A stretch of DNA of 64,000 nucleotides from Podarcis muralis (Eukaryota): positions 682,001-746,000 of the forward strand of contig NC_135663.1 of assembly GCF_964188315.1 (NCBI RefSeq), read 5' to 3'. The notes beneath the pieces are model-generated. The model was not told the DNA's origin and made no database searches. It worked only from the letters and a program-made list of their open reading frames with translations. Positions 43,091 through 45,477 of the stretch are shown here, one piece after another. Each line of letters begins with the position of its first letter. Positions within the stretch are counted from its first letter, which is position 1. Made by a program: the position numbers and the translations under genes.

Positions 43091-43098
43091 TCCTCACA

Positions 43099-43238
43099 GT
43101 CTCCCTATGCTTACCACAGGCAGCGTCACCACACATGCTGACTGTATAGAAACGGGAGATAGAGAATCGATAGCCCTGCGTATACACCACAGCCAGGCCG
43201 ACTTTCCCCTGAGCTGTATTGTTAGTACGGGTACAAAA
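43099..43238 (+). ncRNA. SNORA51: H/ACA snoRNA SNORA51
   Basis: TGCTTACCACAGGC, CTGACTGTATAGAAA, TATACACC and CTGTATTGT match recalled human SNORA51; H box 43161-43166; ACA 43233-43235. Confidence 0.88.
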
Positions 43239-43539: not shown

Positions 43540-43860
43540 GTCAGTAGGGGCGGGGTGGGGCCTTGGGTATGCCAGGTGAACAAAGGTGCTGAACCGCGGC
43601 TCTTGCACAGTTTTTTTATTTCAAGCAGCTCATCTACTTGGTCTTGAGTCTTTCTGGTGCTAATGTCCGTTTTCAGTTCCTTTGTTTTAAATTTGATGCA
43701 TGCAACAATTTGTAATAACTTCATCCGGATCCTTTTTAGGCTGCTGTTAACAAGGGCCCGCTTTTTAAGAGAAGCTGCACTGCGGAGGGAGGTTAGGAGT
43801 GTGGCCCGGTTCTCCTTTCTGCCTCCTCTGTGTTCTGATGTGCCTCCCTCCTCCCTACAG

Positions 43861-44150: not shown

Positions 44151-44420
44151 GCCGGAGTGGAGTTTTAAGCATTGTAACGTTTTGCATATGCAACGTTAGC
44201 TGGTTGCTGAGCAAGGCCTAGGGCAGCTCCCATGGTTTGGGCCACTAGTGCAGGTGGATGCTTCGGACTTTTCTACCTTCCTGTTTGGGGCTCAGCAAAC
44301 CCCGAGCCCCTTGCGCAGCCTGGGAAGCAATTTGTCTCCTGGGCACAATTGTGGGTCTGGCTGCTGCTCTCTGAGGCGGCTGCGCCACATGATTGCCTTG
44401 CCTGTCTCCTTTCCCCGCAG

Positions 44421-44521
44421 GTGGGCGCCCGCCTCATCTCCCACGCTGGCAGCCTGACCAACCTGGCCAAGTATCCAGCTTCCACAGTGCAGATCCTGGG
44501 TGCAGAGAAGGCTCTCTTCAG
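44421..44521 (+). CDS. NOP56: NOP56 exon 8
   Basis: [33 protein letters not shown]. Confidence 0.97.
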
Positions 44522-44536
44522 GTACAGCTGCAGGGC

Positions 44537-44637
44537 GGCCGCAGTGATGGCAGGCTCCTGGGGTGCTGGGCTTGATGTGCTGGTCAAGTCCCATTGGCCG
44601 CATGTGTGATGGGCTGGCCCCCAGCCTCTGAGCGGTC
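44537..44637 (+). ncRNA. SNORD86: C/D snoRNA SNORD86
   Basis: Intron 8; stem ggccgc/gcggtc; C box GTGATGG 44544; C' GTGATGG 44606; D 44628; both GTGATGG boxes match recalled human SNORD86. Confidence 0.8.
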
Positions 44638-44827
44638 ACCCGGGCCATTCCCTTTCCCCTCCATCCGGTAGGTTAGCTATTTCAGGCTTGGCCTGCGATG
44701 GTTGGACACAGCTGGGAGGAGGGAGACAAGCCGCGGTTGGTGTGTTGGAGGCTTAATTTGTGGGTCTCGAGGTGATTCTCTTCCTCTGCCAATTGTCTTG
44801 GTGAACCTTGCCCCCTCTTTCCCGCAG

Positions 44828-44976
44828 AGCCTTGAAGACTCGGGGAAACACCCCCAAATATGGCTTGATCTTCCACTCCACTTTCATTGGCCGAGCAGCT
44901 GCCAAGAACAAGGGCCGGATCTCCCGCTACCTGGCCAACAAGTGCACAATTGCATCCCGCATTGACTGCTTCTCAG
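44828..44976 (+). CDS. NOP56: NOP56 exon 9
   Basis: [21 protein letters not shown]...RIDCFS. Confidence 0.97.
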
Positions 44977-45030
44977 GTGAGGAGTCAGGGCCTGGCCTAT
45001 CTCTGTATGGAGCTGGACAAGCGGCCAAGC

Positions 45031-45109
45031 AGCTTTGCTATGATGGTTACATTTTTCGTCAACAGCATTTCACCCAGTGAATGGTGACGCATCAAGGCTG
45101 AGCGAAGCT
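45031..45109 (+). ncRNA. SNORD56: C/D snoRNA SNORD56 (18S Cm517 guide)
   Basis: C box ATGATGG 45040; ATTTTTCGTCAACAGC; D 45098; 8-bp terminal stem. Confidence 0.92.
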
Positions 45110-45399: not shown

Positions 45400-45477
45400 G
45401 CTGGATGTGATGAAATGACCTAAGCCTGACCTATCCACCGGTGGAGGCAAAAGCTGATTTAATGAGTCTGATTCAGC
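45400..45477 (+). ncRNA. SNORD57: C/D snoRNA SNORD57 (18S Am99 guide)
   Basis: C box GTGATGA 45407; guide CTGATTTAATGAG; D 45468; stem gctgga/ttcagc. Confidence 0.92.

Follow-up and report, generated by a model that had tools for sequence, protein, structure and literature searches.

Every box C/D snoRNP contains NOP56 as a core protein, and the human SNORD86 switch is, to our knowledge, the only described case of a snoRNA that gauges how much of its own core proteins is available and redirects the splicing of one of their genes. One intron of the NOP56 gene of the reptile Podarcis muralis raises the question of whether such a switch also exists outside mammals. This intron lies within the 64,000-nt stretch of DNA that we analysed (hereafter the window; the two exons and the parts of the intron described below are on its + strand). 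A preliminary description of the locus had proposed that the SNORD86 circuit is conserved here and that it dates at least to the amniote ancestor.

According to the literature on the human switch, an excess of core proteins brings SNORD86 into its snoRNP form, which turns the upstream donor off and the downstream donor on, and the product of the downstream donor is a substrate of nonsense-mediated decay (NMD) that ends as a cytoplasmic snoRNA-capped lncRNA (PMC7038934, PMC11028025, PMC8162545, PMC7277114). When the core proteins are absent, one of these accounts has the D and D′ guides pair into a stem, termed the 'non-snoRNP conformation', and the upstream donor is used (PMC7038934). The same reviews credit the switch to Lykke-Andersen et al. 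2018 (PMC7038934, PMC11028025, PMC8162545), and the statements on conservation in two of the reviews give it within Eutheria only (PMC7038934, PMC11028025).

The NOP56 intron and its box C/D element

The intron under study is bounded by two coding exons. The upstream NOP56 exon (44421–44521), recognised from its translation, its Pfam Nop-domain relatives and the acceptor AG at 44419–44420, has 44421 and not 44422 as its first base; it encodes 33 residues plus the two leading bases of an Arg codon, and ends in …EKALFR. The next NOP56 exon (…RIDCFS) spans 44828–44976 and is followed by the donor CAG/GTGAGG at 44977 (here and below, a slash marks the splice junction). Measured from its upstream donor the intron is 306 nt long, and its remaining part (44678–44827) closes with the acceptor AG at 44826–44827. 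Translation shows at least three more coding exons farther downstream.

Three snoRNAs in other introns of the gene are recognised at the Rfam gathering level, namely SNORA51 (43098–43238), SNORD56 (45035–45105) and SNORD57 (45402–45474), the latter two being found in related loci too. The element that we describe (44534–44640) is placed between SNORA51 and the SNORD56/SNORD57 pair, as a SNORD86 orthologue should be. Human NOP56 has its snoRNAs in the same order, with the intron under study as the SNORD86 slot.

The element has the anatomy of a box C/D snoRNA, with a GUGAUGG box that departs from the expected sequence once, in its final G, a CUGA box and a 9-pair terminal stem. In the consensus structure, the 5′ strand of this stem (GGCGGCCGC, 44534–44542) pairs with the 3′ strand (GCGGTCACC, 44632–44640). 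The C box, in which the final A has become G, occupies 44544–44550 and is followed by a conserved CAG; both it and the CUGA D box (44628–44631) are invariant in both of our alignments. It begins 22 nt past the GT of the upstream donor, exactly where a SNORD86 C box (GTGATGG) had been read before. A G-rich D′ guide region (44551–44572), containing AGGCTCCTGGGG (44552–44563), would form the 5′ strand of a rod, its alignment columns 20–41 pairing with columns 80–99. Next come an internal hairpin (44575–44605, helix 4 of the consensus) with a UGAUG-like box (TGATGT, 44573–44578), the C′ box region GUGAUGG (44605–44612) and a C-rich D guide region (44611–44627), assigned from the fold and the alignment, which contains CCCCCAGCCT (44618–44627) and would form the 3′ strand of the rod. 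The two guide segments for which an alternative pairing had been suggested are present in the window as written, and they are paired with each other in the centroid fold of the element. Both the C box (GUGAUGG, 44544) and the C′ box (UGAUGG, 44607–44612) end in G, and in human SNORD86 an A-to-G change likewise ends both boxes (PMC10234308).

Similarity to the eutherian SNORD86 family is low, at 12 bits in a human–reptile comparison made through Rfam and the literature. The Rfam SNORD86 model (RF00594) gave no match to the whole window at the gathering level and no match in a scan of 601 nt with E-values up to 10. A search of 126 nt returned an alignment of 12.1 bits (E 8.9), under the gathering score of 35, which is weak but runs end to end. 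The element is also longer than the model, at ~105 nt compared with 86 nt, and the predicted stability of the 105-nt sequence (−47.7 kcal/mol) is not above that of dinucleotide shuffles (z −0.51). Since the Rfam score is sub-threshold, orthology rests on position, motifs and structure, and on these grounds we consider it very probable that the element is the orthologue of SNORD86/U86 in this reptile, in which case the Rfam model misses non-mammalian members of the family.

The terminal stem starts 12 nt past one donor and ends 30–35 nt ahead of two closely spaced candidates for another. Donor 1 (CAG/GTACAG, 44522–44527) opens the intron directly after the exon end at 44521; reading the sequence bears out the preliminary description of it as weak, with neither an A at +4 nor a G at +5. 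On an approximate donor matrix it scores 0.9 bits, against 5.7 and 7.0 bits for the two flanking constitutive NOP56 donors. A second donor had been proposed at 44668, and the GT found there (CCG/GTAGGT, 44668–44673), which extends the exon by 146 nt, is the best-scoring GT of the intron with 4.0 bits on the same approximate matrix. The site that is conserved elsewhere, however, lies 4 nt downstream at 44672 (TAG/GTTAGC, 44672–44677; 150-nt extension, 1.5 bits), where it forms part of an AGGTYAR motif. Our candidate position for donor 2 is 44668, 44672 or both.

Continued from the exon into the intron, the reading frame runs to a TGA at 44607–44609 (ORF end 44609) within TGTGATGG, in the C′ box, as described previously. 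The TGA ends 58 nt ahead of a junction at 44668, also in agreement with the earlier count, so that the predicted distance from stop to junction in the window is 58–62 nt for the two candidates (44668 and 44672). Because at least three coding exons follow, several junctions would lie far beyond a stop at 44607. A stop in frame is expected by chance in a non-coding extension of 146–150 nt and counts little on its own.

Conservation of the layout in related loci

Related loci were collected by a word search with the exon and its read-through into the intron, which recovered short ORFs on genomic contigs. In group 1, these ORFs read …FRYRCxVVAVMAG…; AVMAG in this string is the C box in translation, spaced as in the window. 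Those of group 2 read …FRYWGxPSLLGxxVAAVMAG…. The group 1 contigs are L001–L012, together with L016, which a DNA pattern search among metagenome contigs added, and the group 2 contigs are L013 and L019. Two more, L017 and L018, were reached via the downstream exon, and the L018 contig stops short of the relevant part of the intron. L007 and L008 are near-identical. As distinct sequences, group 1 amounts to nine: the window, a bird-like clade of six, L005 and the metagenome contig L016.

Exon identities separate these loci into several lineages. L001, L004, L007, L009, L011 and L016 form one GC-rich clade with 92–96% exon identity, which appears to be bird-like, a tinamou NOP56 fragment being within the same match list. 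The window shares 85–89% exon identity with this clade, and L005 shares 82–85% with all other loci (the window was omitted from that comparison). Between L013 and L019 the identity is 88%, and each is 83–87% identical to the remaining loci. At least three lineages, separated by 82–89% exon identity, carry the layout described here, in eight distinct sequences other than the window; the sample behind the group 1 counts is small, with six of its nine sequences coming from one clade.

Some further sequences were set aside. P0012 might have been taken for a spliced transcript that reads through donor 1; its source is a set of short metagenome contigs, from an organism without the upstream intron, which makes it uninformative. 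The rodent UniRef fragments P0174, P0203 and P0205 are apparently intron-retaining or 5′-incomplete models and have no bearing on the donor.

Within group 1 the order and spacing of the elements are strongly maintained. The donor AG/GTAC is present in 9/9 sequences and GTAC in all 11 of the related introns that have a snoRNA; the read-through search needs open first codons and is blind to GTAA, GTAG and GTGA donors, so these counts overstate the universality of the weak GTAC donor, which is in part an ascertainment effect. In every one of the nine, exactly 22 nt lead from the GT of donor 1 to the start of the C box, and the D box is found at +96 to +106. Translation from the exon first meets a stop at the TGA of the C′ region in nine of nine, a frame that the search biases likewise, and the C′ box itself is more degenerate in the bird-like loci (UGAUCA, UGAGCU or UGACGG). 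AGGTYAR follows donor 1 by 136–189 nt in all nine, as AG/GTTAGC, AG/GTTAAC or AG/GTCAGA. The spacer that leads from the 3′ stem to this motif varies in length and is unalignable, and the motif is invariant nonetheless; it is expected by chance in 0.2–2.7% of shuffled spacers, depending on the species. The distance from stop to donor 2 ranges from 57 to 101 nt across the nine sequences.

The conserved motif is weak as a donor on the approximate matrix (1.5–3 bits). A pyrimidine at +3 is rare among real donors, and one of the constitutive donors of this same gene, G/GTCAGT at 43540, has it; its use indicates that GTY donors work in NOP56. AG/GTYAR is the best or second-best GT in 7/9 group 1 introns, the exceptions being L004 and the window, whose top-ranking GT is the one at 44668, and donor 2 scores above donor 1 throughout group 1 except in L004.

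As a separate observation, the pyrimidine at +3 of AG/GTYAR (44672–44678 in the window) is itself kept in all nine group 1 sequences, a constancy unexplained if a donor were the only thing needed.

Group 2 carries a variant of the same arrangement. Both L013 and L019 have a GTACTG donor, a C box at +43, a longer snoRNA (127–141 nt) and GAG/GTAG placed 13–15 nt past the 3′ stem. A covariance model built from group 1 ranked the elements of L013 and L019 first within their loci, with 22.1 and 20.8 bits respectively (E 0.003 and 0.006), and the Rfam SNORD86 model gave no match to the group 2 element. The 44668 donor of the window is absent from the bird-like loci and resembles the GAG/GTAG of group 2, and GGTAGGTTAGC in the window unites both types of downstream donor, the AGGTYAR motif and the GAG/GTAG-like site.

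These comparisons bear on the simplest alternative, in which the boxes, stems and GTs of a GC-rich intron would only by chance look like the human layout. A folding z-score of −0.51 and a sub-threshold Rfam score are what such a coincidence would give. The conservation data contradict it, with the same order and 22-nt spacing in eight other sequences, compensatory changes in the stems and recurrence of the elements in a second lineage (L013 and L019), and we regard it as extremely improbable. Judged from the loci compared, the SNORD86 layout of the window is more than chance since it recurs in eight other distinct sequences, and the full switch layout is conserved over at least three deep lineages.

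The guide-to-guide rod and the putative donor switch

RNAalifold, applied to the nine snoRNA sequences, predicts the 9-bp terminal stem and a rod. In this rod the CAG just past the C box forms pairs with the CUG in the D box, the G-rich D′ guide region is joined to the C-rich D guide region, and a hairpin occupies the middle. Over the consensus rod and terminal stem, 90.5% of cells are paired, compared with 31–43% for slid partners, and 9 double-change pairs were observed, compared with 1–4; 0/500 shuffles reach the observed values, a comparison that relatedness can inflate according to the pair-counting method's own trials, and the structure was derived from the same nine sequences that were used for counting, six of them from one clade. 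Taken by parts, the terminal stem (9 pairs) has 95% of cells paired with 3 compensatory pairs among the nine sequences, the guide-to-guide helices have 88.8% paired, compared with 22–56% when slid, and 4 double-change pairs, and helix 4 (9 pairs) has 88.9% paired with 2 double-change pairs. As to the covariation analysis suggested alongside the preliminary description, the stems change in a compensatory manner across the nine sequences, and the pairing register that it had put forward is itself 78.8% paired.

In a longer alignment, RNAalifold also draws a small hairpin that encloses donor 1 (44511–44536 in the window), the last exon bases GCUCU..CAG pairing with CUG.AGGGC. The GGG of this hairpin shares bases with the terminal stem, on the 5′ side, which makes the two structures mutually exclusive. 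The exon side of the hairpin is coding, so covariation is uninformative there.

The arrangement found here matches the human switch in several respects: the host gene is NOP56, an orphan C/D snoRNA lies between two donors (known here from sequence), the C and C′ boxes end in G, the D and D′ guides pair mutually, and use of the downstream donor is predicted to retain the snoRNA and add a premature stop. By this analogy, our preferred reading, held with moderate confidence, is that the donor switch operates in the reptile as in human. When the core proteins (SNU13, NOP58, NOP56 and fibrillarin) are scarce, the RNA would keep the rod form, which would sequester the D box and the bases adjoining the C box; donor 1 would then be chosen and the entire intron removed, giving productive NOP56 mRNA. 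In excess, the core proteins would assemble on the C/D motif beside donor 1 and block it, whereupon splicing would shift to donor 2 and the snoRNA would be retained in the mRNA. The TGA at 44607–44609 would end translation 58–62 nt before the new junction, with at least three further junctions beyond, and the transcript would become an NMD target. It is from the human system that we infer the use of donor 2, the decay of its product and the dependence on core-protein levels.

A related logic is known for SNORD2 in EIF4A2, where alternative pairing in cis shifts splicing of the host to an NMD isoform (PMC10324135, PMC11028025). Both cases involve an intronic C/D snoRNA and an alternative pairing in cis; SNORD2, however, pairs with the downstream intron and hides a branch point, whereas the pairing in the window is internal to the snoRNA and the putative choice is between two donors.

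The element might instead be an ordinary orphan snoRNA that is cut from its intron, with AGGTYAR not a productive donor, no NMD isoform and no feedback. The conserved motif could then be a binding site for U1, or another intronic element, that defines the weak upstream donor or aids processing of the snoRNA. Its low score and its pyrimidine at +3 fit this account, as does a thermodynamic signal that does not rise above shuffles. The placement of the snoRNA, 12–22 nt from the 5′ splice site and 115–236 nt from the 3′ splice site, is atypical for such a passenger, since intronic snoRNAs usually lie ~70–90 nt upstream of the 3′ splice site. Guides that pair mutually, with covariation, are ill-suited to a trans-acting guide RNA, and in most of the introns no more than one GT outscores the motif. 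The same layout is, moreover, a proven switch in human (PMC7038934, PMC11028025). Taking these points together, we consider an ordinary passenger snoRNA unlikely.

A second alternative comes from frogs. Filippini et al. 2001 and Renzi et al. 2002 are said to have described the production of Xenopus U86 as an alternative to splicing. Applied to the window, the weak donor would splice poorly and cleavage of the unspliced pre-mRNA by a XendoU-type endonuclease would free the snoRNA; snoRNA and NOP56 mRNA output would compete, and neither a second donor nor NMD would be necessary. The Xenopus laevis U86, like the element in the window a non-mammalian U86 within a NOP56 intron, is a XendoU substrate, and one of the two intron-encoded snoRNAs that this enzyme processes in Xenopus (PMC3113570, PMC4427830). 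Conservation of the weak GTAC donor agrees with this mechanism, which leaves unexplained both the invariant downstream AG/GTYAR or GAG/GTAG and the guide-to-guide rod. We find it slightly less probable still than the passenger reading. It differs from the favoured donor switch in releasing the snoRNA by endonucleolytic cleavage in place of donor choice and NMD. These two main rivals, the passenger snoRNA with its U1-binding element and the XendoU-type competition, could each be compatible with a switch.

Loss, age and snoRNA context of the cassette

One locus has lost the arrangement. In L017 the homologous NOP56 intron (L017:294–475) is only 182 nt long and has the donor GTAACC. In the alignment of L017 with L001, GGCTGGTTGCTG-GAGCGCAG aligns to GGGTGGTTGCGGTGATGGCAG, the C box being destroyed. 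The relic keeps CTGA at +132, and the downstream motif has decayed, with GGAG/GTCGTC found 33 nt before the acceptor. The group 1 covariance model gave no match to this homologous intron. Although a single case, L017 fits the view that weak donor, snoRNA and second donor are interdependent. Another lineage, without the C box but still with GTAC, is hinted at by the ORFs P0017 and P0019, so this dependence of donor and snoRNA is not firm. The earlier proposal of a conserved switch holds in so far as the DNA layout recurs in eight other sequences and a second lineage; it does not extend to L017, where the cassette is gone.

The age of the cassette can be approached from its distribution. The U86 of Xenopus, being in a NOP56 intron, indicates that the snoRNA itself predates amniotes, and an origin of the circuit in the amniote ancestor, as previously suggested, is plausible. 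The human switch is reported within Eutheria, whereas the element described here belongs to a reptile and has relatives in bird-like and other vertebrate genomes. We tentatively entertain, as possible though short of probable, that the complete cassette is far older than Eutheria, spanning lepidosaur-like, bird-like and group 2 lineages and reflecting autoregulation in an ancestral amniote or tetrapod; its decay, of which L017 is an example, would involve loss of the C box and of the downstream motif and a change of donor 1 from GTAC to GTAA. If true, the NOP56 feedback loop would be pushed back by more than 300 million years, and natural variants together with one natural loss would be at hand for dissecting the essential features of the switch. 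What is new here is a SNORD86-type cassette in non-mammals, while regulation of this kind is known from human.

Other NOP56 introns of the related loci contain further snoRNA matches. L013 has a SNORA26 match (45 bits, exceeding its gathering score of 40) and one resembling SNORA42 (49 bits, short of 70), at L013:900–1021 and L013:2711–2840, and SNORD56 gave no match in this group 2 locus at E-values up to 1, so its snoRNA complement differs from that of the window. In three related loci, the intron directly upstream of the EKALFR exon contains weak matches to SNORD110 (L005:53–123, L007:363–432 and L009:945–1014), with 26–31 bits against a gathering score of 64.
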